Part shown: positions 4,776-35,100 of the stretch, in pieces | Position numbering within the stretch: position 1 is the stretch's first letter | Layout: every line of letters starts with the position of its first letter | DNA from: Ascidiella aspersa | Lineage: Eukaryota | DNA: 64,000 bases | Assembly (NCBI GenBank): GCA_963924565.1 | Contig: OZ004608.1 | Span: 32,922,001 to 32,986,000 of the forward strand | Direction: 5' to 3' | Notes under the pieces: model-generated | Told to the model about the DNA's origin: nothing | Database searches by the model: none | What the model saw: only the letters and a program-made list of their open reading frames with translations | Position numbers and translations under genes: made by a program

Positions 4776-4947
4776 TCTTCTAATACTATAGAAGGGCGTA
4801 TCTTTATGGAATCCAAACCATTGGCAGCAGGTTTCTACTTGTCGAACAGTGTTCCGCTGACGCGTATATAAATAATAAAAAAACTCAAAGTTTAAATAAA
4901 ACTCAAAAGTTTAAAAACCAGAGTTAAATCAGGATCAGTTTTTTAAA

Positions 4948-4989
4948 AAGGAATATATATTTCGCCTATACTGGCATCGTCAGTTCCTT
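4948..4989 (-). ncRNA. Minimal type-I hammerhead ribozyme motif (Penelope-like element type)
   Basis: Minus strand reads AAGGAA-CTGACGA-T-GCC-AGTATA-GGC-GAAA-TATA-TA^TTCCTT. The core is intact, with a 3-bp stem II, a perfect 6-bp stem I (AAGGAA/TTCCTT) and a palindromic stem III region. Confidence 0.8.
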
Positions 4990-5919
4990 ATTCAAATAGA
5001 ATCTTCTGATAGTAGTATAAGTGCCGGCCAGATACCAAACTGGTATAGAAGTTTTAGACATGATTAGTGACCCAACGAGGTGATTTCAATCTCGAAGTGT
5101 AGGTTTTTTTAACAGAAGGTTAAGAACAGGAGGTAAAACTTTCAACGCAAAAGGAAATTATCAAATAACAATATGAAGAAATGCATTAAGCGAACTGCTC
5201 TATAAGGTTTCAATTACCCAATAGGCGAAGTGTTTAACCACCGTATACACGCGGTAATAGTAAAAATCAGATGCCTATACCATGCATCTCGTCTCATTTC
5301 TAAGAGTACCGCGAAACACTGGAAATATCTAAAGGAATTTTACAGTATTGATACTGCGACGAATAACATTATTTCTGTCAAAAGCACACCTACAACGTTG
5401 GGCTTTTTGTCAAATCTTTTTTAATAAGTGTTAAAATATAATTGGCTTTTATAGAGACAAAGTAGTCCGCATTTAACGATGTAGTTGAGCCTCACCTTAG
5501 TTATACGTCATCGTTCTAACGCGAATATCCGTCATCGCCTTTTAATTAGGTAAAGTTCGCCATTAGGGCGGCTAAAGGCCGTGGGTTGCCGTCTACACAA
5601 TTGTGTAGGAGGGGGTGTACTTAGCGTTTAACTTGGCCAACAGGGAGATTGAGATTGATTTACTAGCGCTACGGTTTTCCACAGTATAAACAGTTTCCAA
5701 GTCTAATAAATTTTTAGTATGTGGGCTAAATTTTGAGGGGAAAACATGTTTTTTTTCTCATTAATTACCCTTTCTTCAGTTTTCTACAGAATGTTTTTAA
5801 CTTATAGAATGTCGAAAACATAAAAGTCGGTATTGTTTATTTAGTAAATATTTAGACCAGTCTTTGAGCTGTAATTAATAAACAAAAACAATTTATGGCT
5901 TGCATGTAACTGCGGAAAC

Positions 5920-6919: not shown

Positions 6920-8500
6920 ATGGAGTAAAAGGCCGGAGAACGAAATCGGGCGAAAGTGCTTTTCCCGTAAATTTAGAACCGCGTGGAATCCTGCCAGTGT
7001 GTGTGTAGGAAGTGGCGCGTCGCACTGCATTTACCGTGTAACGATAACAGCCCTGGGGGCATTTGAGCACTTCGAATTCTTGAACGCGATGTCAGCATTC
7101 GCGACAGGATGTTATCATCGCCTGTAGTCGATGGATGTGTAGGACGAGGTGAGAGGTGGTAAAGGTTTGAAGATGAAATAACGGGAAAATGCCGAATCGA
7201 AATTAGCTGCGTTAAATCCGCCAAAATAACCAAACGTGGAAAATAGGACAGAACAAATGCTACTAGATGAGATAAAAAAATATTTTTTATGCGAAAAGCA
7301 CTTAATTACTGAATTGCAAGGAGAGAGTGCAAATACTGTCGATACACAGTAGTCAGAAATGCTAATTGGTTGAGCAAAAAATATTTCTTTTAATATATAC
7401 CTCAGGGTTATAATTCTGGTTATTTACTGTGCATCGTTTGATTACGGGGTCGTTTTTCAGTACGTTCTTTTTGTAGGTATTCAAACTCGCGGATTCCGCG
7501 CTTGAAATCGCACGAGCAACAAAGCACTTCGGTTGTGACTTCAAACAATAGAAACCCCGCCCACCTTTTAGAGAAGCGTTAGGTGTAAGCAGCTTGAAAG
7601 CGCAGACAGGCGCGAACGCATTGTTACAACCTTGAACTTGCGAAAGAAAAAAGGTTGGGCTCTCTCTTTAGAGGCCGTCAGTCTTTTTCAACGTTTTCGC
7701 TTCAGTTTCTAGCGTTGGTAACATATGGCTGTGAGTTTTATAAAGTCACGCCAATTGAATGCTGACTTTGACCTAGGCATTTTGCTTTGGGAACGTGTGG
7801 GAACGGCCTTTCCCTATTGTGTGTTATAGGGAAAGTCGGAAAGGGCTCTTTATATCGCTGCGTGCACAAAGCGTGAGAAACAATTTTCTTTTCTTTTTTG
7901 GCGTTACAATAACCTTACCTTAAGCCATATGCTGCTTTATTAATGTAACGGTTTTCCATATTGTTCAGATCCGCGTGGTTCGCTTGCAATGTTTGCGCGA
8001 GTTTTGTTATTTTAAATAATCTTTGGTGAAGCCGTATGGCAGCAACATATGCTATATGTGAAGGTTAGTTGAGGTTACAAACGAGTAGGTTGTGAAGTGT
8101 CAAATAAGTTTTCCAAAGAGACAGACACAATAAGGGACATCGACTTAGTTTTGGACTCGTTAGCTACAATTTAAAACATTTTGAAGTATAGTGCAAGAAA
8201 AAAAGTGAAGTTAAGACAGCGTTACAGTCGAAAGAAAACTTCAACTTAAAAAAGTTGCTGGTATGGTAAAAGTTAAACTGCTTGACACAAAATTTAATAT
8301 TAATGAGGTACACTATGCACTGATCTGTAATGAACCTTCATAATGAATCTCAAAGTCAAAAAGGTCGAGTAGATCGACATCATCTTGATAAAGACATATC
8401 ATCTTCAGTTAGTGTGACTGTAACATATATAAACATAACTTACAAAAGGTCGAACTCAATTCTTATCAATCTGAGTTTCGAAATTTTGGAAATATTTCAG

Positions 8501-8549
8501 TTGAATTAACTGATGATAATACAAGCAGGTATCGAAACGTCTTTTTCAA
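8501..8549 (+). ncRNA. Minimal hammerhead motif in a Penelope-like remnant (~8325-8550)
   Basis: CTGATGA-T-AATAC-AAGCAG-GTATC-GAAA-CG-TC^TTTTTCAA. The first stem II pair is an A.C mismatch. Flanking 8325-8410 is homologous to 17123-17230. Confidence 0.6.
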
Positions 8550-10007
8550 TATGATTTCGATTTACTCCACCTTTTAGGTATTGAGATTCATTGTCAAGCT
8601 CATAAATGGCAAGCAAATTGCAAATAGGTTCTTAATGTTCAAAATAGCCCAGTGAAAAATTATTTTGTTGTTTTTTGCTTTATCGTTCAACGTTGCTCTT
8701 GGCGGCCCTACATAAAACACATTCTGATTGATCGCCAAACTTTGTAAAACTAATGGCATACGTTTGGCGCAAAAGTTCCTGGAAAATTTCCCCACTCATT
8801 TCGGCTTCCAACTCAAGATAAATGTGTGAATGCTCGTTCGAGTCTGTTACGCTTTATGTTCTTTCGAGTGTTCAGTAAACACAAGAACATGCAATAATTT
8901 ATTTGTTTGCTGTGTCTTACCTGTAGTTATTAAATAAATCCCAATTTTAAACAAGAACTTGGTTTTACATTTACTGTCTGCAGAAGGTTACTTAATTACA
9001 AAGTATTGGATAGGGAAGGATACCTGATGCCAAGCGGTAGTATCACCCGATAAGGCTGGTATTAGGTCCAATACGATACCTGGATAACACATTAACATAG
9101 GAATTTTAGTCATTTTTTTGTTTTCAAAGGCAGCCATTAAATCTCGCCTTTCGTGCATAATGGTTTGAGGTTGTAGTAAGACGTAGTAAGAATGTTAAAG
9201 CCAATACAGAAGAAGTTAACACTTTGAACGCTTTGATTACCTCTTTATTCAATTTCAACAGTAAAAATGTAGAAAGGATTTTGAAAATGAATACAGAGTT
9301 ATGCGAAACGTACAAAATGATACCTACTTCATATTCTTACTTCGTCTGACTGATAGTTATCCAGCATTCGGCCCTTATTTACAGAAAACTTGTTGCCCAG
9401 TTTCGAAAGTCCTTTTTTAGAGAAGTGACCGCACTGGGAAGGACTTAAGTCAGTTGTTTACAGCAGTGTTTCTTAAACAGGTGAATGGTTTACCCCAGGG
9501 TGAACAAAATTTTTGCAGGGGTGAACCAACCAAAAGGAGTGAATAAGGGTGAACCGTCAGAAATGGATGATAGCTCTGCAGTAAATCCACTACTTGTTTT
9601 TTGGTGTGTTTTTTTGCTTATTGTAATAGTAAAGTTGGTTTGCACTGAGTGCGTAAGTACAAAAATTTGGTGACTGTGTTTTTTTGTGCTTTTGTAGCTT
9701 TATATTTCTGGACTCGAGAAATCGTACATTTGCAATGGTAAAACTTAGCTTGAGTTGATCTTAACAAAAATCGAAACAACCCAAGTCATTTTGTGCTGTT
9801 ATATATAGACGAGATACTTTTATCATATCATGAGACAAGGGTGAACGAAATCTGGAGATAGATGCTAGGGGTGAAGAAAACTCAAAACACTGGTTCACAG
9901 CACTGCTATTACCACGTGACATTCACACGTTTATATTTCCCCCCAAACAGCGCTAGGGTGATTTTACGTCAAGCCGCCACAGTGTGACATGCCCGATCGC
10001 GTGCGCA

Positions 10008-16000: not shown

Positions 16001-18627
16001 CGATGCCCACAAAAGATATTTTGGACAAAAATTACCGCGATATAATCCGATACCAAATGACGTCATTACTATGCTCATATAAGCGAAATAAATTAAATGC
16101 TAGTTTTTAAAGGTAATTTTTCCAGGTTTTTAAATTAACATTTGCAATAGCTTAAGAAAGTTTATTATGTTCAGTTGTTAATCTTGTATATTTAAAAAAA
16201 ATACCTTTGAAGGTAGAAATACATGCGTTGAATCGCAAATCAATGCTGAAAATTCTATATAGATTTAGTATTGGATCGGCACCGATACCACCCTAGTATC
16301 GGACGAGTACCGATACCATTACTTGGCGTCGGGTATCGATTTTTATATAGTGCGTTTCGGGGTAGTAAAGACGGAATGGCATTAAACATATGTTTAACCA
16401 GTGCAATATACTTTTTTTGTCTCAGTCAAAATCAGTCACTATAGGTTCTAGTTTATTGTATTCGGTTTTTAGAGACTGATGATGCCGTGATTGGCGAAAT
16501 ATATTTTTCTTTTATAAACTAGAACCTATAGTGACTGATTTTGACTGAGACAAGAAAGTCTAAAGTATATGTTTAACCAGCTGTTTAAAAGTGAAAATTA
16601 TTTACTCGTACTTTTAACGGTCATGCCAACTTTGGGCTGCTGCATAATTTTGTCCTGAAAAATTAGTAGTTTTACTCTTGCCATTTATTAAGGCCACAAT
16701 AACAATAAAAAACGTGTCCAATGACCTCTACAAATTAAACGTCTGCCAATTTCGCCGCTGGTCTACCGAAACGATTAAGTTTGACGTCACATATTGTGAA
16801 CAACGGTCATTAGGTTCTCGCTTTTCGTTAAAATTACATGTCCATTATTGCTTTACGTAGAAATACAAATGCCAGGTCCGGCCGTATAAGGTCGTCCAGC
16901 GAGAATGCGTCGTAATTTAATCTGCTATCTAATGCTCCGAAAAAAATAATTCGCCGACTGACCAACCGTAGGATTTGCAATTGATTTAAAATGATCCTGG
17001 GCTCTTTTTCAATCCGGCAAGTTTGAAAAATAAATTTACCGACTCTGTACAAAATTTTTACCTTCGCTGCTCCGTGGAAACTAGCTTTATAAACACTAAA
17101 CATGTAGGGAAGCTTATGCATGGATCTGTAATGAAGATTGATAAATGAATTTCAAAGCCAAAAAGGTCGGGTAGATCGAAATCATTTTGATAAAGACGTT
17201 TTGATATGACCTTGTATCATCTTAAGTTAACGTCTTTAACTTTTACTTGTATTCCACAAGTAACAATAACTGAAGATGATACAAAGATCGTATCGAAACG
17301 TCTTGTGGCTTTGAAAATCGTTATCAAATAAATATCTATTTCTAAAAAACAAGCAAAAATATCCACAAAATAGGTATATTGTTACTGCTGCCTTTACTTG
17401 ACTAAAAATGCGTCGATGGCAGATTTGGGTTTGGCTAAGATTAGACCAAGAACACCACGCCTTGTTCTATATTAACCTATCCCCAAAATCCGTCTTTTAT
17501 CTTCGAGCAATCGCTTGTGTTACGTCATCGACTAGTGGTTGAAGAAAGTCTGTTTGTCGTTAAGCGAGACGTCAGGCCGAATTAGGTGACGTGACAAGTT
17601 AAATAGAAAATGGAGTTTCCCCGGTGGAATGGTTGTGATAATGTGTCAGTATGCGGCCGGAATTCTCCTGCCATTTACAAAAATTATTTTCTCATGTAAA
17701 ATACCGACCTAACGTTTTTTTCCACCACTCATTAGGCGTCATATATACTGCCAATAGACTATAAAAGTTTAATATTTTAGGCTCTATGTCTATGATATAG
17801 ATGCTAAACCCCGAAATTTTTAAGGTAGGGCCTACTCGTTTTTCTAAAAAAAAAACGTTTTATTTTTGGTGAATGTGCTTCGTTTGAGGCGATTTGGTAA
17901 CTCTACAAGGGTTTAAAGAATAACTATATTAGCCTGTTTTAAATAAAGTGCCTATTTTAAATAAAAAATAAAGTGCCTATTTTAAATAAAGTAAAGTACA
18001 AACATCCTACTTCCTCATCTAATTTATAATAATACCAAAATTGATGAAAAAGTGTAATTTCGACCAAAAATAACAAACAGATGTCGGTTTAGGTCGTTTA
18101 CCTTGCTGCATGTCCTGATTTCAGTTAATAGCCTAAAATTGTCTAATTTTTTAATCACTAAGCCTCGATTTAAAATAAGTATCTATAATTGCTTTAAAGG
18201 TTGCGCCGGAACATTTTCCAACATCGCCGTCGCCGATCCGAAAACCGAAGACGACGCGATCGCCGTGTACTGGAGCAATGATGTCACGAATGACGACACC
18301 AGCAGTGACGTACCCCCTCCCGTCTACTCGTGTGTCGTCATCACGAACGGTGACGTAACACAGGGCACGGACTCGGTGCAATCGGTCCAAGATTCATCGC
18401 CGCCCGAATATTCAAGCGCGGTTGAGCGAACGACTGACTCCGTGGCGCCGCGTAGCGACAATGGGAGAGGGAGAAACCTTTTCCGCGTGGTGTCGCTGAC
18501 GAGGCTGTTCGATAACGCGCTGCGAACGGTTTCGCAAATCGTGGCAAGGGAAACGATTCGGACTCGCGAACGGGAGAGTTCTACAGTCAGTAACTCGAAT
18601 CAGCCGCAAACGCCGCCAACTGTATAA
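10008..18627 (+). CDS. Single-pass membrane protein with three PPxY motifs (NEDD4-family WW-adaptor-like architecture), ~294 aa
   Basis: Exons 10008-10325 (phase 0 out), 15689-15827 (phase 1 out) and 18200-18627 are GT-AG and phase-consistent. N-terminal sequons NGT and NIT precede TM segment ITAGVFMVLMIAIVTTLLL, then CCC and RKRRRQR. The tail carries PPSY, PPVY and PPEY. The start is uncertain (possible upstream exon at 7725-7730). Confidence 0.78.
14040..14477. mobile_element. hAT (Charlie-like) MITE
   Basis: TIRs CAGGGGTGTCCAAC and GTTGGACATCCCTG (1 mismatch), GCGTGCC subterminal motifs, and flanks ACTTACCA/ACTTTACA as a decayed TSD. Confidence 0.8.
16388..16580. mobile_element. Foldback insertion: 40-bp perfect inverted repeat around a hammerhead motif, flanked by 14-bp direct repeats
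   Basis: 16417-16456 is the exact reverse complement of 16514-16553. ATATGTTTAACCAG occurs at 16388-16401 and 16567-16580. Confidence 0.8.
16471..16510 (+). ncRNA. Minimal type-I hammerhead ribozyme motif
   Basis: AGAGA-CTGATGA-T-GCC-GTGATT-GGC-GAAA-TATA-TT^TTTCT. The core is intact, with stem II GCC/GGC and stem I AGAGA/TTTCT. Confidence 0.75.
17254..17308 (+). ncRNA. Minimal hammerhead motif in an inverted Penelope-like remnant (~17123-17330)
   Basis: CTGAAGA-T-GATAC-AAAGATC-GTATC-GAAA-CG-TC^TTGTGG, with a 5-bp stem II. A degenerate inverted copy lies at ~17193-17229, and outer arms ~17140-17165 and ~17302-17327 are complementary. Confidence 0.75.
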
Positions 18628-18885
18628 CTTGCGGTCGCGGACTGGCGAAAACGACCGTCAATTAACACCACTGTCCATACCAAAGAAACAAACTAATTTC
18701 GCCAAACCTATTACCCTGATAACCGGCGTTTTAACCTTTTAGGTGCAGTTTACCGGTTGTTGTTCTTGTTTTGTTCGTGTGTCCAATACAGAGAACGATC
18801 GGCGTTAAAGCCTTTTGACATACTGGAAACAATGTGATGGGTTGGGCAATTGGAACGGCGGGCAGATGTACCTGTGGCGTTAGAC

Positions 18886-21044: not shown

Positions 21045-24000
21045 ATGGTGAGTACGTTAATGGTAATGCTATTATGAGTCAATGTAGTGGGGTTATTGTT
21101 CTTTACGGGAGAGTAATTATGAGCGAATTTACCCCCAAAAATTGCTTGTAGGTGAACAATAAAGTGGAAGAAATAAGCGCTCAGAAAAACGGATTTTTTT
21201 ATTGAGCGTTTTCAAAAACTATATATTTTTATTGTTTGGTTATTGTTCTTCACGGGAGCACAACTATGGGCGATTTTGATTAAAAATATTCGCTCAACGT
21301 GTAAAATAACGTAGAGAAAATAAGCGCACAGAAAAATAGTTTTTTTGAAAATATTTAAAAAAATGTTTTGTAAATTCTAAAATTACATCTAATTCGCAAT
21401 TTTTTTTATGACAATTTCGGTAAATTTCGTTTTTGAAAATATTATATAAATTTTATTTGGAAATTAGTTAGTATCATGTATTAGGCAACGATAGCAAGTC
21501 TGAAAGCGATTTCTATTCAGACCTATACGTTTCTTGTGGACCTTTTTTTTTAATTCTGTAGAAAAAACGACGTTAATGGTGACGATGTGGCGCTACCGAA
21601 TTACCATAACAGAAAATGCGTTTGGCAAACTCTAATAAACATTTAGTAATATTTGTTTTACCATTCAAAATCACATTTAAACATATATTTTTAAAAACGC
21701 AGGAGGTTGTATTATCAGAAGAACAGAAATGTGGTAAGAAAAATGATTTATTTGTTTAACATCAAAATTCTCTATAATAGCCATAGGTTGAACTAATGAA
21801 TACAAACGAGTGACACGCAGCGCGAATTACAAATATAAATAGGCCTACGCTATGATACCGCTTGTAAAAGGAACTTTAAAAAGGTGGTATCTATATTTGG
21901 TTTAGCTAGCAATCTAGCAATATCGTTACAATATTTGTTTTATTTTACGCAATCCCTGTGCATATAATCTTTATAGGGGAGATTTTTTTCACTTCGGACA
22001 TATTCATAACAACATAAAGTTCGCTAGTTTCTAGTCTCAACTCAATTTACACAAAACGTTAGCTGTGTTGAAGGTGTTTGAATAGTGTTAGGTGCGTTTA
22101 TTTTTGTTTTTGTTTTATCTGCTTATAAAGCTGACGAAGGATAACAGGAATAATCTCGAAACTATAGCAATACTTCTAGGCGATCTTTAAGTGCCAATAG
22201 CCTTAACAGTAAACATAATTGAAGTGAAAGTACATGTTTAACGAAACCCGAATAATTCTGAGCCAGCTTGCACAAACGACCATCGAAGAACAACGTCACA
22301 CTAAAGTTCGTAGCGAACATGCCCTAATTAGGAGCGTTGGGAGGTATACAAGGGCCAAACGAAATCTGTGAAAACGATTTAACACAGGGACACAGTAGAT
22401 ATTGGCTTTCTGTTTATGAGTGTTAAGGTTATGCGAGTAAGCTTCCACAGTTTATCTTGTCGAAACCCGTCCAAATAAGTCCTAAATATATCGCAATAAC
22501 ACCCAAACCTTCAGGGTGGGGATATGGGACGATCGGAGGCCACCGGTCTGGTATTGGTCGCTTTGGTTTCGACGTTAGGGTGCCTCAGTTTAAACTGCGT
22601 CTTTGGTACGGCTGTTTTGGCTCTGGTCTGTTTACCCCTGTTTGGGGTTACTTGCTAGGCTTAGGATTTGAGTCAGGGATTATTATACAAAGACTTTGTT
22701 TCTTGGCCTAAGGCTTTAATCTGACGGGTTTAGGTCGTATTCCGATTTAGTCGTTTTTCGGAATATTGTGCATTAGTCCTGCTTTTGCCTTTTTGAATAA
22801 ATAACAAGTCAAGTCCCGGTCAAGTCATAATTAAAGCAAGTCAATTCCAAGAAGTCCCTGATACAAATTTTGGGTAAACTCGTCCGATTATGAGCAATGC
22901 TCTAAAAAATGCTAAAAAGGCAATAGAGGGAGAAAAAATTGTTTCACGTGCAAAACTTGGGATAAATAACCTTATTTTACAAAACAAATCTTAATGAGAA
23001 CACTTAATTTTGGGTGAATGATATGTTGCACTGAATATGTGAATAATGGAAATCACCTTGACCCTTGCAAGATAAATGTCGACCTTAATTCCTGATCCCT
23101 TGATATACTGACGATGCCTTGGATTGGCGAAATATATATATATCTTTAAGATCTGTTTATTGTGTCTGACCTGAATTGCTAGCTTTGCTAGAGTATTTTG
23201 CTGACACTTAATTTCAACCCATATAATTTGTCTAAAAGACTTAAGTCAAGTCAAGTCATTTTGCCAAAAAGTCATTTTCCAAAAAGACTTCTCAGTCAAG
23301 TCAAGTCATTTGAACAGAGTGACCTAAGCGTACTTAAGTCAAGTCATTGAATTAAGCCATTACAACACGGCCGTCTTTACCCACTACCTATTCCACTGAA
23401 TCGTGTTCTTAACAATATAACATTATGTATATGCCAAATGCGCGCGCGGCAGAGTTTAAGGCGGCCTTCGAAGTTTTCACGGCTGACTCCGACGACGGAA
23501 CCATCACCACCAAAGAGCTGAGCAAAGTGATGCGGATCCTCGGGCAGAATCCCTCCGACCAGGAGCTCAAGGAGATGGTGGATGAGGTTGACATGGATGG
23601 TGAGAAACAATGAGAGCTGGAGAAAAGGATAACTGCCGAATTTGGAGTTGATTTGAACTTTGTGTTGTCAATGATGTGGATGCTGTAGGAATTGAAGGAT
23701 TTTGGAATGATGTTTATAGCCAGTTTGGAAACTTGTAATTTTGTTTGACTTATTAACTTTTTGTTGCATGACTGATAACTTTCTGGTAGGTTGCATGGTT
23801 AAGAGGATACAGATAAGAACGTTTTAGTCCGATGAAGAAGCTTTACATTGCGTGGTAATTACAGTTGGACGAAATTACAGTATTCGTTTGTTAGAATATC
23901 CCCTCACTTCTTGTGAGTGTTGTTAGCAGCAAATCCACTAAACGACAATAGTGGAGTCATACAGCCTATTTGTGAACGGGAGACTTTGACAAGTTACAAG

Positions 24001-27000
24001 TCCCTTCTTCGTCCTTTTAGCCTTCAGCTTTTCAGGCTGGTTGCACGAAACAAAGGCCAAGATATAAACATGAAATATTTAAGCAACTGAAGGGCAAATG
24101 GGAATTTTATCCAGGATCCTATCGACTTGGGTTGTGGCCTATAGGCTACATCTTGATCTTGTTTCTTGGAGAAACGTCTTTGCTATTTTGTGGAGTCGGG
24201 CAACAAAACATTCGATTTTGCGGAATTGGCGATATTGGTGACATTAATTTTGTTAGGTTTAGCGACTACTAAAAGAACATTTTAATTCACCAAAATATAT
24301 TGTTCTATTAGCGTAACTACCACAGTCGTAGAGTGTCGAGTTTCTACAACGTCAATATATACAGTCAGAACAGAATGAATCTCTCGCAAGCCAACACATG
24401 CGAAGTGTCACCGTGCTACTTACAGCGACTGACAACTACCAGTAGCAAGACAAGACGTTTGCGGTGGAACAGCTGTTGCGCGATCACATCAACTGACAGC
24501 AGACATTAGGCGACAGTCAGTTTCGCTATGAACGAAATGCTGCGTATAGACATCCGATTTGCATCGACAACTTTTGGTATATTGGACGGGCTACGGTGAT
24601 GTTGAAAATCAAATCAAAGTTTTATTGGTAATTCTATAGGAGGCCGAAAATTAACAGACAAATTTTGCCTGAAAAACTAAGTTACCTTGGAATAGTTACG
24701 GTTGTGTTCTTACACTCATTTCAACGCTGTACATAGCCTACTAATTATATAGGTGCGTCTTAATCAAACAAAAAGTTTGAAGACTCAAAAAGTATTCGTT
24801 CACAAATAAATTAAACAATCATGTCAGAACTGCGCACACTTTCACACATTTTTGCACTCAGAAAAACTATTGCGCACTAATATGGCAGGACATAACAAAC
24901 TTATAAGGTGGCAATACTGGTGTCCAGGTTATTTATTTTTCCCTTTCGCCTGCGAAAAACCTGCAGTTATAATGAAGTAAATAATTTCAATTTCCAAAAT
25001 GAAACAATTTTTTAGGTAGTTTAATTAAAAAAAAACACACTTTGATTGTATTTAAACTTCAGTTCAGTTTCACATTTTTTTTACCGAGGCGTTTTAATGG
25101 CCCTAAGAACTTAATACAGTGGTGCCCTATATGCGTCATTAAAAGTAAAAACAAAATAAACCACGTAATATATTATAATTATACATCGAAAATATAGAGA
25201 GGTTTAAGATGATACCTGAAAAATAAATATACGCAAAAATATATTACAACCGGGCCACTGTTGAGGTCTAAGTCGTCTGACAAACTCCAATCACTTCATT
25301 AATTACTGAAGCACTATTGAAAATTCGGCTATGAAAATTTCTGTGGTGCCTCCTTTCCTTGTTTACTTTGCCTAATGGTCAATCCGGCCCTGGGTATATG
25401 AAAATGCGAGTCGTTTAAAATTGCTTTCCGCGCCCAGAATTCAAGGCGGCCTTCGACATTTTCGTGACCGACTCTGAGGACGGCACCATCTCGTCCAAGG
25501 AGCTGGGAAAGGTGATGCGAATGCTGGGTCAAACGCCCACTGAGAGCGACTTGACAGAGATGATTGAGGAGGTCGACGTCGACGGTAGCGCACATTCCAC
25601 TGTGTGACGTCACAATCGGCATATTTTGAAAAATGCTGTTGCTGCTCCATGTCACTTAACTTCACTGCGAATGCACCATTCACCACCTACATTTCATTAA
25701 CTTCGTATAGCGACCAACGGGTTGGAATTGAATGAGCAGCGAGTTAAGCGCCTTTATTCGGCGTGTAACTCAACCGTGTGACGTCACAATTGGCATATTT
25801 TGAAAAATGCCGCTGCTGCTGCTTGTCACTTAACTTCACTGAGAATGCACCATTCAACACTCACGTACTATTAACTTCGTATAGCGACCAACGAGTAGGA
25901 CTTAGCGAGTTAAGCGTCTCTACTCGGCGGGTAATTTCACTGTGTGACGTCACAATTGGCATGTTTTGAAAAATGCTGCTGGTGATCACTTCACTTCACT
26001 GCGACAGCACCATTCACCACCTATATAGCATTAACGTTCAGCGTCTCTACTCGGCGAGTACTCGGTAAAGTATTGCCGGAATTGTTTTTCGCAACTCGTA
26101 TGATATTAGTATCTGCATGGCTTGCTGTTATTTTTTCACTTTTGTGAACTAATTTTGTTTAAAATGCATGACTAATTACAATTGTTTATTAGCGCTCATT
26201 TTTTTTTGTTATTTGAACTTTAGTCTTTTTAATCTAGCATTCACCCTACGTAGTTGCCTCATTTCTATTGTGCACGATTTCACCTATTTTTGCTTTAAAA
26301 AAGCTTAGGTTTCCGTCAAATCTATTTTATCTCCTTTTTAATTTATTCTGAATCTTGTCGGATTTAAATTTATACCGAGATCTTTAGATTTGTTAACGAT
26401 TAGACAGTTTATTTTTTTACAATGTATTAATCCAGTTTTTTTTTACAATTTTACCTAAATGCAGTCAATTCGGCTATTTAAAAATATCAAATTCCAAGTT
26501 TTCTTTACAATTTGGTAAACGTAGTTGTTACAATTTATCAACAGCTATAGCTATTCTGTTTTGACTTTGCCAGAATCAAGCCGCTATCTTTGTCATAAAT
26601 CAAATCCCAACTAGATTTTACCAGTGTACCTAAAGCCCAACAGATTCACGAGCCACGTCAAGCCAGTTTAACCTGTTTTCGGTCGCGTTAAGGCAGCGGA
26701 ACGATCGACTTTGAGGAGTTCTGCCTGATGATGTACAGACAGATGCAGGCCGACCAGGAGGCCAAGATCCCGGAGCGAGACGAAAAGGAACTGGCCGAGG
26801 CTTTCCGCCTGTTCGATCTCAACCACGACGGCTTCATCGACATCGAAGAGCTTAAGGTAGGTGTTGGGATTTTTGTTTTTGGAAAACTTGCGACATGAAT
26901 AGGACTGGTTGGTCTGCCGTTTCAGGATGTGAGATATGCGCATTTGCCGTAATATATAGGCCTACCAATAAATGGAAAAATATAAATGACCGTCAAAACG

Positions 27001-29922
27001 AGGGGTTAGGGTAGAATAATTTTTATGTCCAAACGTATGAAAGTGCTGGGATTTTAGTTTTTTGGGAAAAATATGCGACATAAGATAGCGCTGATTGATC
27101 CGCCGTCTCGGCATGTTCGATATGCGTATTTATGGTGTTATATTCCGAAACAGATATTTTAGGCAAACATATAAAGGCTGTCAAAACGAGTGAAAAACTT
27201 AAAAAATAATTTAAAAAAAATTTAAACTTTTTTTTCACTTAGCCTTGTACTTAGGTCAATGTTTATTAACACATTTTTTTTGCTCAAAAGTCTGTGCTTT
27301 TTTTTTAAACTCGCAACATAGATAGGGTTTGGTCTGCCGTTGCGGGATGTTCGATATACCTATTCATGGCATTTTATATTACAAAACAGCGTTTTTACGC
27401 AAACATATAATGACCGTCAAAACGCGGGTGAAAGAAAAATCCTTTTCATACCCAAATGCATAAGTTTTTAGAGATGATGTCATAATGTCCCGCCATAAAA
27501 CGGAACTTTAGGGAACTTAATGGGTGGATTTTGTGTTAAAATCTTAATATAATTACATGCAACGAGTCGTCGACAATGATTTGGGCAACTAGAAAATCAT
27601 TTTATTCAAGTTAAAATTGGCAAAAATATCATTAGAAGGGACGTTACGGATTAAAACTAAAAAAATTGTCTCAGAACGAGACTTAAACAGGCGAAAATTA
27701 TAGTTTTGGTCATCGTCTTGTAAAAAAATACCGGTACGGGATACCGGCAATCAATATTTTAACGAGCGCCGTTTCGCTTACATTTACAACTCAAAAACAA
27801 AAATGTACTTACATTTAACTCATAAACGGGCAAATTTGAGTCGTAAGCTATCTTCGTCATGGTGTTTTGGAGTTTTGTTGACGAGGGGGGTGTGTTGTTG
27901 GGTTGCGGATTTAAGAGATGTGCGATTCTTGTATATGTTCAGACAGATTCACGACATATTAAGCTAAAACTACGTCAGGTGAATTATTTTAATCAAATTG
28001 TCGCTGACTGAAGAGATTTCATGGCTAGACTACCTTACGTTACCTTACAGCGCTATCCAACCACGAGCGATACGACCGAAATATTCTTTTGATTGGCCTG
28101 TTTTAATTCAATATAGCCCGAGATGTTGTTTAAGCTAACTACAGTAACTAGTGTTGTAATGACTTAAGTGAATGACTTGACTTTGACGTATGAACAAACG
28201 ATTTCACTCAACTTGAGTATTTTAAACAAATAACTTGGGTTGAAATAAAGTGTTTTCATTTATTATATTTAGCAAAATTGGTTATTTATCTTAAGTTTTG
28301 CACATAAAAATATTTGCTTGCTTTATGTTGCGTATTAGATTATTTTTTACCAGAGTATTGCTCATATTCCGACGAATTTATAAATTTTAATAGTTTAACG
28401 ATTAATTTTTGTGACAAGGACTTGAATTGCTCTAACTATGACTTCACTTGTTTAATTAAAAAATACTTGACTTGGATTTAACTTCTGTTACAAATGACTT
28501 GACTTGGTCCTAAGTTATTTCACAAATGACTTGTATACAACACTGTATGTGGCCTAGTTATGTTATTAGCCGACTGTAACAACGTATATCTTTTCAACCA
28601 GGCGGCATTGGTAGGAACCGGTGAATGCATTGATAAGTGGGAGGTTGATGAGATGATGTCAGATGGCGACAAAAATCAAGACGGACAGCTCGATTATGAA
28701 GGTAAAAAGTCGCATAACATCCGTTGCCGTTTTGCACAGTATACTTTAAACAACGTACTTAACATTCTGCAACGCCTCTTTTACAGAATGTCATGCGGTA
28801 AATGAATTAAATTTCTGAACCATGACCCTTAAAATATAAGCCTTTTTAAATTTTTTTTTCATTGCAAAAACTATAACCCAATTAGTTTAAATGAGCAAGG
28901 TTTTTTTCAAAATGCCATGCAGTAAATAAAAAAACAGAAATATACACATTTTCACTTAACCAGTTATCATCGGCTAATTTGCATTCCATTATTTGAAAAA
29001 ACATTTTTTTTTTGCTTTAGGGTGATACAGATCAACGTTGTCCTGAAGTTTAACCCACCGTAATACAGCAGAATAAAACTTCATTAGCACAGTAGAATTT
29101 TTGCGTAAATTAAAAATTTATACTTCGTTTACACCAGAAGAGCGATTTCTATCTATTGATATGTTGCCTGGTGGAGCTAACTCTATTATTTAAACATTGT
29201 TTTAAAAAAAACAATATAATGACGTTGAGCATTATTGTTACATTGAATGTGTGATATTTAAAATCACCTTGACCCTTGCAAAACAAATGTCGATTTTAAC
29301 AGAAAAGTGGCAGCAACATAGTCTAACAATGCTAGTATTCAGGTCGGATACTTTGATGTTAAAAACTATAGCCAGCGAAATATATAATATATACAAATAT
29401 TCTAACATTTTTATAAAGTGTCGCCTGACCTTCATACTTAGCACTGTGACGTTGATTTCTAGAAAAACAATGCCCATTGCTTGGGAGCATGATAGCGTAG
29501 TCTCGGCAATTGCTTAACATAACTAAAATAGTAATCGTCTAAAAACAATATTTGTATTCATTCGGACTTCCTTTTTTGTTTTGCAGTGTGGGTGAACCTA
29601 ATTACTTGGCAAAACTAAAACATGTTCAATACAATAAACCGTGCAAGTCTTTTGGACCAAGACTTGACTTGGACTTAGTCATGGAGTCAAATAGCTTCAG
29701 TTAAAAAGAGCTGTCGCTCATAAATCGCCCGAGTTTGCCAAATTAAATAGTTCAACGTTTCATTTTTACGCCGAAGTCTTCTAGTTTACATACTCCAATA
29801 ATGACTTGGCTGTCAAATTGAGTACAGGACTTCATTTATTTTTGAAATAATTTAACTTGAAACTTAAAATGATTTTTCAACTTGCAGAATGGGTGAACTG
29901 GATGAAATTCGTTCCCGCCTAG
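21045..29922 (+). CDS. TnC: Troponin C (ascidian type), 159 aa with the distal last exon
   Basis: Exons: ATG only 21045-21047 (|GTGAGT); 21703-21733 ([10 protein letters not shown]); 3a 23453-23599 or 3b 25438-25584; 26693-26856 ([19 protein letters not shown]...[18 protein letters not shown]); 28602-28701 (AALVGTGE...[11 protein letters not shown]); 29888-29922 ([11 protein letters not shown]). Phases are consistent and there are four EF-hands, with a cardiac-type insertion in site I. AATAAA at 30088. Confidence 0.93.
21091..21360. repeat. Two-copy ~147-bp tandem repeat in TnC intron 1
   Basis: GGTTATTGTTCTT(T/C)ACGGGAG...AAATAAGCGC(T/A)CAGAAAAA occurs at ~21091 and ~21238. Confidence 0.7.
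22790..23369 (-). mobile_element. GACTT-family MITE, reversed and truncated, interrupted by a hammerhead-bearing insert
   Basis: AAGTCAAGTC arrays and terminus TTACAACACG at ~23369. Sequence at ~23000-23200 is unrelated to the family, and ~23050-23085 resembles ~29260-29295. Confidence 0.7.
23102..23144 (+). ncRNA. Minimal type-I hammerhead ribozyme motif in TnC intron 2 (sense)
   Basis: GATATA-CTGACGA-T-GCC-TTGGATT-GGC-GAAA-TATA-TA^TATATC. The core is intact and stem I (GATATA/TATATC) is a perfect 6 bp. Confidence 0.8.
23453..23599 (+). CDS. TnC: TnC mutually exclusive exon 3a
   Basis: 147 nt, phase 1-1, (E)[48 protein letters not shown](G). Donor GTGAGA. Confidence 0.9.
25438..25584 (+). 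CDS. TnC: TnC mutually exclusive exon 3b
   Basis: 147 nt, phase 1-1, (E)[48 protein letters not shown](G). Donor GTAGCG. Confidence 0.9.
25598..26063. repeat. Three-copy ~170-bp tandem repeat, each unit with the palindrome TGTGACGTCACA
   Basis: Palindromes at 25603, 25777 and 25943, each followed by ATyGGCATrTTTTGAAAAATGC...CACTT(A/C)ACTTCACTG...GCACCATTCA. Confidence 0.88.
26905..27430. repeat. Three degenerate ~105-bp repeats in TnC intron 4
   Basis: A TTGGTCTGCCGT...GATGT...GATATGCG...CGTCAAAACG-like unit occurs at ~26905, ~27092 and ~27325. Confidence 0.65.
28149..28545 (+). mobile_element. GACTT-family MITE, full length
   Basis: TAGTGTTGTAATGACTTAAG...GACTTGTATACAACACTG, colinear with 1503-1917. 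No TSD retained. Confidence 0.8.
29587..29618 (+). CDS. TnC: Putative alternative TnC terminal exon (6a): (V)WVNLITWQN*
   Basis: Strong acceptor CTTCCCTTTTTTGTTTTGCAG in the correct phase. It starts TGTGGGTGAAC, close to the distal exon's AATGGGTGAAC, and has its own AATAAA at 29633-29638. Confidence 0.72.
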
Positions 29923-32106
29923 ATCCGACAAATTTGAACGCAAGTTCGGGAGAAAGCGCGAGGAACAATCACCGTTATTTTATCACAACACAACAACAAA
30001 CAAGTCATTGTTCTTGTCCAAAGTCGCCCCGAATGTTTCTTTCGTCATTGTAGAAGCGCCAAAAACTGGAAACGCGTCGCCTGCCCGAATAAAAGGCCAG
30101 TTTAAATAGCCACGAAACAGCGCCCGAGTTCTCTTTTGAATCGGACTTCGCAGCCAGTTTGAAAAAATACGTTAAAATACATAGGGAAAGCTTTTTTTCG
30201 CACACTGATATTGTGCTGTTTAAGTTTTAGCTGCACAAAAACATGGTAATTAATTAGGCGAATTCAAATTGCGGTACCACGTAAAGCGCCTTTTACTTCT
30301 TAAAATCCTAATCTACACCCAGGTTAAAAAAGTACGATACAATAATACCCTTATTTACTCTAATGTTTCGGCCCATATAAGAATTTGGCGACTTCGAATG
30401 GCCGGACCAAGAAAAAGCCTCATTTACTTCTTAGAATCGAAATCCTCCGTACTCAAAAAAAGTACGAATAATTTATACCTTTTTTCTCAATTATGGATGG
30501 CTGTTTTAAGCATCCCAATAAACGAAAACAGGTTAAATAAATCAGCGGCTTGTATCCGCAGTAGGCCTAGTACGTAAAACACATTTCTTAAACCTTAGAA
30601 TTTTTTTGCAAAAGTGAGTAAATCGCCGATAAAAACGTCCGCGAACTCACAATTCTTAAGTTGTTCATGCGATTTTCAAAAACAATAGCAATATATAGAG
30701 TGGCTGTTAGGCGTCTAAGTGATATTGGCGGCCGGCACTTGAAGTTTGTGCAGCAGAGTTAACAAGGTTGAATCCCCAGAGATATCGACTGCGAACTTTC
30801 GAAATGGGCGATCCTTAATTGCGCAAGAATTGATCAATTAGACAGGGTACGTATGGCTGCCACAGGGCACTGCAGTGAGCATTCCCTAGGAAAGTCCTGT
30901 GTTGCACGACTACATTAAATACGTTGTGGTCGCCAAATATCTTTTTGATTAAACCCTACACCAAAATTGGACGATTAAATACGACAAAACCAGCTTTTTG
31001 GCATTGCAATTTAATTTCAAAGACAATATTTCATGCCAAATGGCGTCACTGGCGTGGTTTTGGCCAAGCATTCCATGTCAAAGATCTGGAAGGTGCTAAT
31101 GCAATCGGGTGGTCTGTTGTGCGTCAGCGGTTCGCGAACTAAGTTTGGTTGGGAAATCAATTTAAGCGAACGCTTCGGGCACGTTAAAACGCAGCCGTGT
31201 CAGCCTAATTTTAAGTTTTGACAGGTAAAAAAAAATGCAAATACCTCATAAATGTTTAGAAGTAGCATTGCCTGTGCTACAAAACCCACATGCCTAGCGA
31301 ACCGTTCAGGTTTGTAGATTAGGACTATACAACAACGGGTATTTACGTTTGACAACAGTTTGAGACTTAGTCCATTTGCTATGCCTAATGCTTCATGTTT
31401 CATGTCCGTAAAATTGCAGAGGTAAGCACCAAAAGTAGTTTATATCTCTTAAGTTTAGCCTTGAATTATAACGAATAAAATCACTTTACAGAAGCTATTG
31501 AAACGGCGTAAGTTATTCTGAAACACAAACTGCCTTGCGAGGTTTTAACCATAATAAGACTCATATGTAGCTGACTTATTTAAACGTGCTTGCACGCTGC
31601 ACTTAACTAAAAATAAGCAACAATACGAGTGGGTTCGAGGATGTGTTTTACGGCCACCTCTGGTAGCAGTTTACTTTGAAGTGTTGTGTGATCGTCAAAA
31701 AGAAGTGCATAGTAAAAGAAGAAAGCACACAGTACTCTGGTTCCTCCAAATTGTAGAAACGCCGCATAAGAAATCTTGAGAGTTTTATGATTTTATATGA
31801 AAATAAAAGTTACAGAAAGGTATACCCAAATCCAACCACGACCAATCGCAACCAGTCGACCTCAAAACGATTTTTTAAGAGAGAGTTCAAAAACAGACTG
31901 GCCAATAGAAAAGTGTTAAGGAGATTTAAAATATAAAAAATCCCCATAAATTGGTTCTTATGTAAGCATATTTATATGTACGTTAAAAAATCCACCAGTT
32001 CTTTCAAAAATTGTGTGCAGTAATAATAACGCAGAGTATAAGCTTGAAGTACTACAAAAATAAGTCAAAAATCCCTTATACTTACACTGAAAACAGGAAA
32101 CAGCAG

Positions 32107-35100
32107 CTAGCTAACGTATGAGGCGGCCCTCTGGTTATAAAGTATCCAAGGTACCACAGAAGCTGCCAGCACCGCTGAACTGAACCAGGGGTGGAACCTC
32201 AGCCAGCAGATGGCGATAGTGAGCAGGGAGAGCCAGACTGCAAGCGTGAAATTGAAGAAGGCAACGGTTGCCGGGACAACGCTTCTCACTATAGGGATCC
32301 AATCGACTAAAAAAACATACGAAAGGTTGTTGTTGGATTTTTACCATGAGAAGCGTCTCTGGATTGCTAAGAGGCCTAATTTTTATGTAAGGTTTGGTGA
32401 GGTCGCAAGTTGTTTACACATACTTGCGTTATTAGGCCAGAAATCGACTGTGGAATTTAGAAATTCCGTTATTTGATATGTGCAATAAGCAATGGCTTTG
32501 GTTGGCTTGAACGCTTAAAATAGGAGGGTTTGTGTCTTAATAGACACAACGTGTTACCCAGTCCTAAAAGAGTAGTAGAATTGGTAAACTAATTTTTACT
32601 GTAAGATAACAGGTTGCGGTTACTAAGCTCTTTAGATTCGAGAAAACAACATTCTTCCCATACACCAAAGTTTCACACAAATTTGGAAAAAAAACATCTT
32701 CCCCTTTCTAAAAAATACAACATAAAAATATATAAAATATGAATTAAAACGTCATACTCATAACAACACAAAACTAGTTTCCCATAAGGCTATGTCTTAA
32801 TTGGTATATAGATGGAAAATAATTTTTTTAGGGGGAATACAGTGTTCTAATGATACGTTACGTTTATATTTGGCAAGGGAACTTTAAAGTAACTGATCCT
32901 GTACATATTAGTTTAAGCAGAGCAGTGGTTCCTAAACTTTTTTTTGTGCGGAAAGAGGGAAGGCATTGAGTTTTTAGAGAAGGCACATAATTTGACGTCG
33001 TAAAACAAGTATATTTAAGTAAACCATCTTTTTTTTCTAAATGTATTGTCTTTTTCTAAATTGTGACATTTCTTAAATCATTCAATAACATTTTAACTAG
33101 GCCTTTATCGACCCCTAAACGTACCAACAAGTGGTCCATGGACCCTAGTCCAAAAACACCTGAAGTATAGATTAGCAACTGTGTATCTCATTTCATCCAA
33201 GCAACCGCAATACCAAAGCAATTTCCCCTTACCCAGAGTGACTATGATCCTTGACATAATGCTGAGGCCCATGTACATGCAGACAAAGCCGGCCAAACGA
33301 CAGAGCCACGTGGTGAAATTGTTGCCAGATCTTTGAGAGGCGAAAATCTGTTCAGAGCTGAGTGAACCTCGGTAGAGAAACTCAATTGATCGACTCCTTG
33401 TGATTGGAAACGGCTTAAACTGGTCGTTTTGTAGCATAGCAATGATGCTCACCTGTAAATAGGATTTTGCAAAATTTTAGCGGGCTCTGTAAGAATACTA
33501 AGGTAAATTAAATGCTCTTGTTTGATTTAAAATTTTAATTAAAAATTGTAACATAGGACTGATACTTACTTATAACATTTCCACTCTGCATGGAGTATAA
33601 AATACCATTTCCACCAATAAAGGCAGTATAAACATGTTAGATAAAACCTTCCAATAGATAGGGATACATTTGGTTTATCCTAAATATTTTGAAGCCGAAT
33701 TTTGTGCCCATTTTAACCACTTAAATGCAAACAGTTTTGCGCTAAACTCATTAGCTTTACACTTGTTTTAGCCCATTTGGTATATCTTGTCAACATATTT
33801 AAAACAGGTGCCTCTGGCAATATATATTATTTTCTACCAACGTTTCGGCTTACTATCCAGCAAGCCTTCGTCAGGGACTGACACACAAAGCCAACAAGAC
33901 GCAAAGTAAAATCACAATAAGAAAAAAGGAGATAAAAATGTGCGAGACCGTCTGTTTCGCGAATCCTGGCAGATACACCGAACGCCGGATACGATGAACA
34001 TCAAAACGGACGTTTTGTTTCCAGCACCGGCAGGTGCTTAAAGATAACCACTAAATTGCGCGTTGTCTTATCGCTTTATATTTTGAACGTTGTTTTATCG
34101 CTGTGAATTTTGAACGAGTCTCGCACACACGCCTGAATCTTGTGAAAGTTTGCTAACTTTAAAGGGACGAAGTCTTTTGTCGCCATACCCTTGAAAATAG
34201 CTGATTCATGCTTGTTTTCAGTTGCATATTTGCGCATGAGACTTATTTTATAAGGGGTCGCCTTTCGTCATACCCCCTCAAACAAAATTATGGAATCCTG
34301 TCTTGATCATATCCTATTCATGTGAAATAAAATTTGCTTAAATGTGTGAATAAAAGCCACCTAAACATAATCTATAAAATATTGTTAGGGTACCTCTGGT
34401 ATTAATCTAGCTGAGGAAAGGTGTGAATGTAAGTGAGGGAGAAACAGGTAATTTTCATTTCTGGCTAAATATGTGGCTAGTTGCAGTTAACCAAGTAAGA
34501 AATGTAGCTCTTGGGCTGGCTAGGCCTCTGCCCTAAGAAATTTTAGGATAACATTTGATTAAGCCTCATTTTTTTGGCTATTTTATTTATTTATTTATTT
34601 TTTTGCTTTGAATACTAGAGCCATCACCCCAGACACGACGTATGCTACTTTTTTTAAAATAAACAAAGAAGAGAAACCTTATCAGGTGGATTCTGAGCTT
34701 GATGTTCTAGGAGTGACACCCCTGCACATTGATAGGAAACTCTGAAGTTGCCAACTTTTGGATTGGCAGGGTCACCATGGAAGAAATACTTGTCGTGAAG
34801 TTGCATTCCACTTTTTTCTGCCTTTGGTAACCGAAGAACTGGTTCGAACCAGTTTATTTTGGCAATCAGTGTTGATGACAATGCAACTTTGTCGACATGA
34901 ACACTGTTAGCTGTGAATTCTTGACTTTCAAGTACAAAGTCCCTAATAAAAAAACACTTTTTAAACTTTTTAATAATTGAATTAAATTAAATATTTATTT
35001 ATTTTAAAAACATAAGAAATTATTAAAGTTAGTTTCTTTTCCAAGGCACACCAATGCCTTTTCTCAATTAATTTTACCAAACTAGATTATTTACCCTACA

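Follow-up and report, generated by a model that had tools for sequence, protein, structure and literature searches.

The hammerhead-like motifs of the 64-kb stretch of DNA analyzed here (the window) are dead copies of short, very abundant retroelements of the Penelope style, a kind described in 2014, and what is new here is a host spliced leader (SL) at the 5' end of copies of such hammerhead mini-elements. Very probably, they are dead insertions of short non-coding elements that moved in the manner of Penelope-like elements (PLEs), with trans-spliced RNAs as templates and with the hammerhead fold kept in master copies.

The motifs were confirmed as genuine and far above chance. The core-only pattern CTGANGA-N8-36-CGAAA has seven matches in the window against a mean of 0.74 in shuffles of the window sequence, none of the 100 shuffles attained seven, and the GCC-family pattern matches three times against zero in shuffles. 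All six main motifs of the original prediction were found at the coordinates and on the strands that it gave. Exact copies in the 308.6-Mb genome number 1190 for the GCC family, 654 for the GATAC family and 258 for the GGCT..AGCC family, and the reversed-pattern controls for all three returned zero. Therefore, the three sub-families that had been distinguished by stem II (GCC/GGC and GATAC/GTATC among them) are genuine repeat families.

Each motif runs in the order helix I 5' strand, CUGANGA, one unpaired base, helix II, GAAA, a palindrome of 4-6 nt (AUAUAU or ACGU) in the place of helix III, U-H and helix I 3' strand. Helices I and II flank the core, U16.1 and H17 are present at the predicted cut site, and the conserved core (C3-U4-G5-A6-N7-G8-A9 and G12-A13-A14) is intact at 4948, 8501, 16471, 17254, 23102 and 33837 and broken in the copies at 3919 (A9 to U) and 17193. 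In all three families, an unpaired U or A bulges out 5' of helix II; the helix II sequences themselves (GCC/GGC, GAUAC/GUAUC and GGCUUGC/GUAAGCC) differ from family to family with pairing kept. In copies of the GCC family, helix I measures 5-6 bp and helix II 3-4 bp, and the triplet is AUA or AUU. It had been proposed that helix I differs between GCC copies and still pairs, and this held: among 35 distinct GCC copies, 88.6% of cells pair compared with 42-58% for a slid partner, both-sided changes occur in five of the six helix I pairs and the covariation score was attained by none of 500 shuffles, a covariation between subfamilies that represents some three or four lineages. The published PLE signature (PMC4209133) is matched, in agreement with the proposed identity as Penelope-like minimal type-I hammerheads. 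The minimum-energy folds contain no stable intramolecular helix III, the palindrome being only 4-6 nt long, and the Rfam covariance models reported no hammerhead family at gathering score or at E up to 10. These folds are hammerhead-like for the copies at 4948 and 23102 and not for those at 17254(+) and 33837(-), where helix I has 4 and 2 bp, respectively. Cofolded copies are predicted to form homodimers through their palindromes, at -3 to -7.5 kcal/mol.

Within the window, the most informative copy is a leader-tagged mini-element of the AGTATA subfamily (4782..5002, minus strand), a member of the GCC superfamily with a hammerhead-like fold. It begins with an exact Ciona-type spliced leader (4987-5002), continues with the hammerhead (4948-4989, predicted cut between 4954 and 4953) and extends through its body and an optional 3' extension down to about 4782. 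In this copy, the AAG that had been taken as part of stem I belongs to the spliced leader, as its 3' end. Close by, a decayed GCC-type arm (3912..3954, minus strand) has the core CUGAUGU, retains helix II GCC/GGC and is 80-85% identical to four family references; its opposing arm (3963..3986, plus strand) consists of a 16-mer two mismatches from the leader SL-B, then AGA and the core, which is cut short to CTGAT. Two head-to-head pairs belong to the GATAC family. In the pair at 8306..8599, the arms 8336-8400 and 8534-8598 are 80% complementary, the hammerhead of the (+) arm (8510-8545) has its stem II interrupted by an insertion and the motif of the (-) arm (8363-8410) is internally deleted. 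The pair at 17115..17320 combines a decayed (-) arm (about 17167-17231) with a (+) hammerhead whose core lies at 17270-17276 and GAAA at 17295-17298, with a 4-bp helix I and a predicted cut between 17302 and 17303. Two of the three decayed copies of the original prediction, 3912-3954(-) and ~17193-17229(-), are thus real, as opposing arms of head-to-head pairs, whereas the third (~22128-22168, plus strand) most likely is not. This core-only match at 22131-22161(+) has a helix II of about 2 bp and no relative among the 90 loci compared; it is most likely a chance match and no family member, since one chance match per window is expected.

A single insertion of the GTGATT subfamily (16402..16566, plus strand) is bounded by a 14-bp target duplication (16388-16401 and 16567-16580) and contains an inverted 3' arm (16413-16456), an unspliced polypyrimidine-AG acceptor ending at 16472 and a hammerhead (16471-16510) with a predicted cut between 16505 and 16506, which fold prediction places inside a 44-bp hairpin of -80.5 kcal/mol. 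The interval 16414-16555 also matches a family of miRNA hairpins, though below threshold. The single TTAGTT-subfamily insertion at 23011..23203 (plus strand) has an 11-bp target duplication (23000-23010 and 23204-23214), an inverted distal arm (23024-23097, minus strand) and a hammerhead arm (23102-23203), in which helix I pairs 23102-23107 with 23139-23144 and the cut is predicted between 23138 and 23139. A 5'-truncated fragment of the same subfamily (29232..29345, minus strand; 78% identity over 119 nt) comprises the distal part only, without the hammerhead. Finally, the GGCT..AGCC-family copy (33795..34127, minus strand) lies in sense in a TMEM43 intron, with its core at 33874-33868, an 8-bp helix II, GAAA at 33846-33843, a 2-bp helix I, a predicted cut between 33839 and 33838 and an acceptor-like polypyrimidine-CAG 3 nt upstream of the core. 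Minus-strand exons that match Pfam TMEM43 flank this motif from either side, which confirms the sense intronic placement proposed for 33837(-); for the other copies claimed to lie in introns it is plausible. Four of the six copies are in sense, which is no sense bias.

The arrangement of the copies points to how they were inserted. They are built of head-to-head arms with the 3' ends pointing outward, and divergent (-)/(+) pairs recur throughout the genome lists; many copies are single arms. The pairs at 16402..16566 and 23011..23203 are each enclosed by one target duplication, and each is therefore a single insertion event. Points of 5' truncation are dispersed, arm lengths and break points differ from copy to copy, and the TTAGTT subfamily has two classes of 3' end, at about +99 and +175. 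Truncation at the 5' end, an inverted 5'-truncated neighboring copy, alternative 3' ends ('tail') and target duplications are among the hallmarks of PLEs (PMC8557442), and all of them are present here. The elements are non-coding and about 100-190 nt long plus leader, with the hammerhead near the 5' end. No reverse-transcriptase (RT) or GIY-YIG reading frame adjoins any listed copy of the three families or was found in the 90 loci examined, and the 25 GIY-YIG matches in the genome, which include a 3.4-kb tandem array, are all more than 5 kb away from any listed copy. Because no reverse-transcriptase gene was found beside them, the families look non-autonomous, and it is their architecture and motif type, rather than an identified autonomous partner, that suggest the link to PLEs.

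The 5' ends speak for an RNA intermediate. Unspliced copies of the GCC superfamily have a polypyrimidine-AG acceptor immediately 5' of helix I. In 338 copies, all sequence upstream of the acceptor AG has been exchanged for one of two 16-nt spliced leaders (82 and 256 fusions; controls 0), so that the junction always follows directly on the AG seen in unspliced copies, bordering helix I on its 5' side, and the sequence upstream of the leader is unrelated from copy to copy. About one quarter of the GCC family's copies bear a leader. One of the 16-mers is identical to the Ciona spliced leader (PMC1488885, PMC7986045); both precede unrelated repeat families, and the same subfamily can follow either one. 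Given that both leaders are encoded, with GTAAG donors, in tandem arrays of SL RNA genes that repeat every 429 bp and 584 bp, the sequences indicate that trans-spliced RNAs were retro-copied. The copy lists of the GATAC and GGCT families contain no leader fusions, and helix I is weak, at 4 and 2 bp, in the window copies examined from these families.

We propose that a staggered break would prime reverse transcription from each of its two strands, in line with in vitro work in which a PLE protein cleaves and extends both DNA strands (PMC11167929). As no reverse-transcriptase gene adjoins the listed copies, the enzyme would be provided in trans. The template RNAs would be host-type transcripts that are SL trans-spliced and then copied to their extreme 5' end. 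The hammerhead fold would be maintained in the master copies, where it may act as a dimer in processing multimeric precursors, and individual intronic copies would not be maintained, nor would useful cutting of host pre-mRNA be expected. More tentatively, and with some doubt on our part, SL trans-splicing may itself belong to the life cycle, the acceptor at the edge of helix I freeing embedded copies and the leader capping the RNA for PLE enzymes. If so, any host transcript, including an intron with a sense copy, could yield a defined element RNA, and the sense copies that keep an acceptor (16471 and 33837) could act as cryptic trans-splice sites that truncate pre-mRNA. Their effect on host genes would then come from these sites and not from ribozyme cleavage.

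The original prediction had assigned a different role to the sense intronic copies, namely that of active ribozymes that cleave the PPxY, TnC and TMEM43 pre-mRNAs in cis or as dimers. The intact cores and NUH triplets at 4948, 16471, 17254, 23102 and 33837, the hammerhead-like folds at 4948 and 23102 and the predicted homodimers are in its favor. However, none of the intronic copies has a helix III that would be stable, and for minimal hammerheads the literature reports no cleavage of monomers and weak cleavage of dimers (PMC4209133). The palindromes of the two sense copies in the PPxY gene, AUAUAU and ACGU, are non-complementary, and these copies therefore cannot share a helix III; one of them (16471) is buried in its hairpin, and helix I is short at 17254 and 33837. 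In another PLE no reads start or end at the cut site (PMC11167929), and RNA reads over 17200-23199, at low depth, likewise have no ends at the predicted NUH sites. The reads over this region, which holds no leader-tagged copy, show the families to be transcribed elsewhere, on both strands. Moreover, the copies decay in place, decayed cores occur even among those selected for a leader, and all copies that still hold motif and body, leader-tagged ones included, derive from uncleaved RNA. With Rfam silent as well, nothing shows cleavage of host pre-mRNA by the motif copies; the claim is unsupported and we regard it as quite improbable. An unlikely but less remote alternative is that the motif is conserved in the masters not as a nuclease but as a signal in the RNA structure, through which, for example, the PLE protein would recognize the RNA or the RNA would be stabilized or exported. 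In vitro, PLE insertion does not need cleavage, no cleaved ends were seen in another PLE (PMC11167929), hammerhead-less PLE clades proliferate well (PMC8557442), and all retro-copies examined here come from uncleaved RNA. Nonetheless, families whose helices differ all retain the strict catalytic core and obey the NUH rule, which a purely structural role would not need, and PLE hammerheads of fungi, plants and protists cleave well (PMC4209133).

Two further readings concern the nature of the repeat. Animal retrozymes are tandem hammerhead repeats with transcripts that cleave themselves and close into small circular RNAs. They, too, are short non-coding repeats with type-I hammerheads; a 2026 preprint derives them from PLE pLTRs (bioRxiv 10.64898/2026.07.22.740005), and one compared locus (L082) has a head-to-tail junction. 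Yet the copies are dispersed or head-to-head, with the two motifs of a pair on opposite strands, and do not form tandem direct arrays, of which the window has none. The leader-tagged, full-length linear copies point to a linear, uncleaved RNA template, and the low-depth reads over 17200-23199 contain no back-splice-type joints at the cut sites; we consider this identity very improbable. Foldback DNA transposons (MITEs), with a core that is chance sequence amplified along with the repeat, would account for inverted arms and target duplications, would suit the miRNA-hairpin match at 16414-16555 and would need only one chance motif to be multiplied through copy number. This explanation is hardly credible, given that the arms vary in length and break point and do not form fixed termini, single-arm copies are common and a host spliced leader at the 5' end demands an RNA intermediate. 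Moreover, the same core, bulge and paired helix II recur across three unrelated stem II sequences, and helix I covaries.

Dead insertions of PLE-type mini-elements remain our preferred reading, and their closest relatives are the minimal hammerheads of PLEs (Cervera and De la Pena, 2014; PMC4209133), a study whose main text does not mention tunicates. The CUGANGA/GAAA core and the palindromic mini helix III are common to both, as are an unpaired base immediately 5' of helix II and a short helix I (4-5 bp in the published descriptor), and in both cases families comprise thousands of mostly solitary copies and include pairs on opposite strands at a distance of 100-700 bp. An intron of D. virilis Penelope has its 3' end at the 5' end of helix I (PMC4209133), the same position as the acceptor here. 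The differences are that helix II has 3-4 bp in the main family here compared with 6-8 bp in the published families, that no flanking RT or GIY-YIG reading frame was found beside the listed copies or in the 90 loci, and that the acceptor appears to be used for SL trans-splicing, with the leader kept in the DNA copies. With canonical type-I hammerheads (Rfam Hammerhead_1, RF00163), the motifs share the core nucleotides, the type-I topology and the NUH cut-site rule; they are without a stable helix III and loop-loop tertiary contacts, and have no score with that covariance model even at E up to 10.

As insertions, they share truncation, inverted copy, tail, target duplications and arms compatible with two-strand priming with the PLEs of Craig et al. 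(2021; PMC8557442; in vitro, PMC11167929). The units here are, however, tiny and non-coding, and the 3'-end classes of one subfamily differ by about 76 nt rather than by the 30-40 nt described (PMC8557442). Animal non-LTR retrozymes (PMC7229834; bioRxiv 10.64898/2026.07.22.740005) are likewise short, non-autonomous, hammerhead-bearing and probably PLE-derived, but they form tandem direct arrays that give circular RNAs and are depleted in introns according to the preprint, whereas the present elements occur dispersed or head-to-head, many of them in introns. Finally, dinoflagellate retrogenes with relict spliced leaders (PMC6050394) offer a precedent for the leader, since there, as here, a DNA-encoded 5' leader marks a retro-copied trans-spliced RNA. 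Those copies are protein-coding mRNAs in protists, whereas those described here are non-coding mini-elements with a hammerhead, found in a chordate and carrying either of two leaders.

We found the six minimal hammerhead motifs of the original prediction at the positions it gave, 4948(-), 8501(+), 16471(+), 17254(+), 23102(+) and 33837(-), start and strand serving here as names. Their frequency is far above that of shuffled sequence: a core-only pattern (CTGANGA, 8-36 bases, CGAAA) has 7 sites in the window, against a mean of 0.74 in 100 dinucleotide-preserving shuffles of which none reached 7, and the pattern of the GCC family has 3 sites against 0. The proposed division into three sub-families by stem II (GCC, GATAC and GGCT) also stands. 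Across the window's own genome (308.6 Mb in 75 contigs) exact matches number 1190, 654 and 258 for the three families and 0 for the reversed patterns, and we therefore regard the families as real and abundant repeats. The predicted copy at 22131-22161 is an exception, with a helix II of about 2 bp and no relative among the sequences compared; one chance match per window is expected for the core-only pattern, which bears on this copy.

The same order of parts is found in each of the three families: first the 5' strand of helix I, then CUGANGA, an unpaired base (U, U or A across the families), helix II, GAAA, a short AUAUAU or ACGU palindrome, U, H and finally the 3' strand of helix I. Helix II is specific to each family while its pairing is kept (GCC/GGC, GAUAC/GUAUC, GGCUUGC/GUAAGCC), and the same holds for helix I among the subfamilies of the GCC superfamily (GGAA/UUCC, AGAGA/UCUCU, GAUAUA/UAUAUC). 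That stem I varies between GCC copies and still pairs is borne out by covariation. In 35 distinct aligned copies, picked via the core and helix II rather than helix I, 88.6% of helix I cells are paired, compared with 42-58% after the 3' partner strand has been shifted by 1-3 columns. Changes occur on both sides in five of six helix I pairs, within only 3-4 subfamily lineages and hence as few independent events, not dozens; 0 of 500 shuffles attain the covariation score. Hammerhead-shaped monomer folds were obtained only for 4948, 23102 and, without its flanks, 16471, with weak z-scores (-1.1 to -1.7). The predicted folds of 17254, 33837 and 8501 are not hammerheads, and with its flanks the 16471 copy (16413-16557) folds into a hairpin of 44 bp at -80.5 kcal/mol. 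When two copies were cofolded, dimers were favoured by 3-7.5 kcal/mol without clear dimeric hammerhead geometry, for which reason we discount them as support for cleavage.

No hammerhead family of Rfam was found in the window at the gathering score, nor when E values up to 10 were admitted. The sole Rfam matches were sub-threshold miRNA hairpins produced by foldback arms. Among them the MIR4208 precursor family scored 50.4 bits against 16414-16555 (gathering score 140); a miRNA gene there was rejected, because the insertion's 44-bp foldback arms account for the match. The motifs belong to the known minimal class of Penelope-like elements (PLEs), as predicted, and not to the canonical type-I family as modelled by Rfam. 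They match the 'min-HHR' described by Cervera and De la Pena, in which a base is left unpaired at the 5' end of helix II, helix I measures 4-5 bp and helix III is a palindromic mini helix, and which occurs in thousands of mostly solitary copies and in opposite-strand pairs 100-700 bp apart (PMC4209133).

The surrounding elements are also of PLE type. Within each subfamily, conservation extends for about 100 nt downstream of the motif (about 175-190 nt where the form is long), and the upstream sequence varies between copies. Pairs of (-)/(+) motifs 60-600 nt apart are abundant in the genome lists and represent head-to-head arms whose 3' ends point outward. Five structures of this kind lie in the window, at 3912-3986, 8306-8599, 16402-16566, 17115-17320 and 23011-23203. 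A 14-bp target duplication (16388-16401 and 16567-16580) encloses the third of these and an 11-bp one (23000-23010 and 23204-23214) the last; since one duplication surrounds the whole pair, each of the two is a single insertion event. In a small sample of motif-less arms the 5' truncation points spread over +38 to +135 and do not cluster at the cut site near +30. The window elements show the published hallmarks of PLE insertions, which are heavily truncated at the 5' end, lie next to an inverted copy that is itself 5'-truncated, may have a 3' extension and carry hammerheads close to their 3' ends (PMC8557442). One purified PLE protein both cuts the two strands of its target and extends them (PMC11167929), an activity that would give exactly such outward-facing arms. 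Animal retrozymes were rejected as a reading, tandem direct arrays being absent, as was a reading as MITEs. A dispersed repeat of 32-nt units rich in AAGTCAAGTC lies in both orientations at 1542-1898, 23214-23314, 28452-28557, 42256-42324, 48189-48300 and 52159-52199; one copy abuts the 23011-23203 insertion, and RNA reads stemming from other copies accumulate at 22600-23000.

A genome search for the GIY-YIG domain (PF01541) gave 25 matches, including a 3.4-kb tandem array, none of them less than 5 kb from any motif among those listed. Reading frames of at least 160 aa in 90 sampled loci included no PLE reverse transcriptase. With no adjoining reverse-transcriptase gene among the listed matches or in the 90 loci, the three families look non-autonomous, and their behaviour as mobile elements is like that of short PLE derivatives without their own enzymes. 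For the GATAC and GGCT families, as for the GIY-YIG loci, the analysis covered genome coordinates and the window sequence. On contig 2 (30628752-30640503) lie six GIY-YIG matches, four of them at 3.4-kb spacing and most containing an open frame of about 290 aa; this cluster looks like a tandem PLE array, and its members are candidate autonomous partners.

Just 5' of helix I, copies of the GCC superfamily carry either a polypyrimidine tract ending in AG or one of two 16-mers. The first, ATTCTATTTGAATAAG, is the Ciona spliced leader (PMC1488885, PMC7986045); in the window it occupies 4987-5002(-), immediately preceding GAA-CUGACGA, and another arm with a leader tag, now decayed, is at 3963-3986(+). 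The second 16-mer, ATTCATTCGAATTAAG, had no match in the literature searched. We identify both as spliced leaders (SLs) because they are vastly over-represented (623 and 2688 genome copies, controls 1 each), precede several unrelated repeat families, can each be followed by one and the same hammerhead subfamily, and have upstream sequence unique to each copy. Both also occur in long tandem arrays with a GTAAG donor directly after them. The Ciona-type leader, followed by GTAAGTTGC, is repeated in 584-bp units on contig 3 (about 5.22-5.43 Mb), and ATTCATTCGAATTAAG, followed by GTAAGCAT, in 429-bp units on contig 7 (about 14.77-14.80 Mb). This arrangement is that of SL RNA genes.

Genome-wide, 82 hammerhead copies carry the first leader and 256 the second within 8 nt of the core (controls 0). 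In every case the junction comes directly behind the AG seen in unspliced copies (AAG|GAA, AAG|AGA, AAG|AUAUA), and in some head-to-head pairs (locus L088 and other paired genome entries) both arms are tagged. The simplest reading is that element RNA was SL trans-spliced at an acceptor on the 5' edge of helix I and then reverse-transcribed to its extreme 5' end. Leaders might instead have been acquired by insertion of the elements into SL RNA genes, a possibility excluded by the unique flank upstream of the leader in each copy. Template switching onto SL RNA during copying is unlikely, given that the junction is an internal AG acceptor and not an RNA end. Acceptor and helix I coincide in Drosophila virilis Penelope as well, where a retained intron has its 3' boundary at the 5' end of helix I (PMC4209133), so their pairing may be old.

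At least two further abundant repeat families, which lack a hammerhead, can likewise have either leader fused to them (sampled loci L031, L039, L041, L054-L060, L063, L069, L084, L085 and L090, near position 1500 of each locus), and leader-tagged retro-copies are therefore not confined to hammerhead elements. Both of these families end in a common ...ataaagacttcagt stretch, and Gag/Pol-like reading frames are present at some neighbouring loci (L058, L059 and L078).

The original prediction further held that intronic sense copies could cut host pre-mRNA in cis or as dimers. The 33837(-) copy is indeed sense and intronic, with minus-strand TMEM43 exons at 35377-35643, 33108-33476 and 32110-32340; for TnC, an EF-hand exon on the plus strand (28530-28802) is a weak match. 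Cutting itself found no support. A stable helix III is absent from all copies, and within the PPxY gene both sense copies have palindromes of their own, so that they cannot form a common helix III. Published minimal hammerheads show no monomer cleavage and weak dimer cleavage (PMC4209133), and in another PLE cleavage was dispensable in vitro, with zero reads ending at the cut site (PMC11167929). In a same-species RNA-seq run on 17200-23199, 469 of 497 reads fit only partly and therefore derive from other repeat copies; nearly all lie over repeat parts, in both directions, and depth over unique intron is near zero. No read ends piled up at 17302/3 or 23138/9, weak evidence at this low depth. 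All copies that keep motif and body, above all the leader-tagged ones, were made from uncleaved RNA. Several copies selected by their leader have mutated cores, and copies therefore decay in place.

Elsewhere in the TnC region, three tandem units of about 166-174 nt (25564-26035, 82-87% identical) sit between duplicated segments at 23450-23601 and 25435-25586. Farther along, a block of about 2.75-3.0 kb is duplicated at 53747-59021 (several segment pairs 88-97% identical, spaced 2754-3039 nt), and long plus-strand reading frames at 59229-63716 encode at least 13 LDL-receptor class A-like cysteine repeats of 117 nt, with one stop near 60336.

The leader tag is a natural mark of the RNA 5' end and is more useful than the motifs themselves. 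It indicates that the templates were host-type transcripts processed by the spliceosome and that reverse transcription got to the cap-proximal end. Where both arms are tagged, both came from full-length RNA, and such pairs provide in vivo support for two-strand priming, hitherto seen in vitro only. The association of splice acceptor and helix I in fly and chordate points to a testable link between splicing and the hammerhead. For gene annotation, the motifs should be masked as repeats and not treated as regulatory ribozymes.

Minimal hammerheads on truncated PLE copies have been known from animal genomes since 2014, and the motifs alone add only a tunicate example. We found no earlier description of leader-tagged PLE-type elements in the literature searched, which leaves room for one; the nearest analogue is the dinoflagellate retrogenes that carry a relict leader (PMC6050394). 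Whereas one spliced-leader class has been reported for Ciona, Ascidiella aspersa appears to have two. The hammerhead and PLE part is thus known biology, here in a tunicate, and the novelty lies in the copies with a leader tag, the second class of leader and the helix I acceptor.
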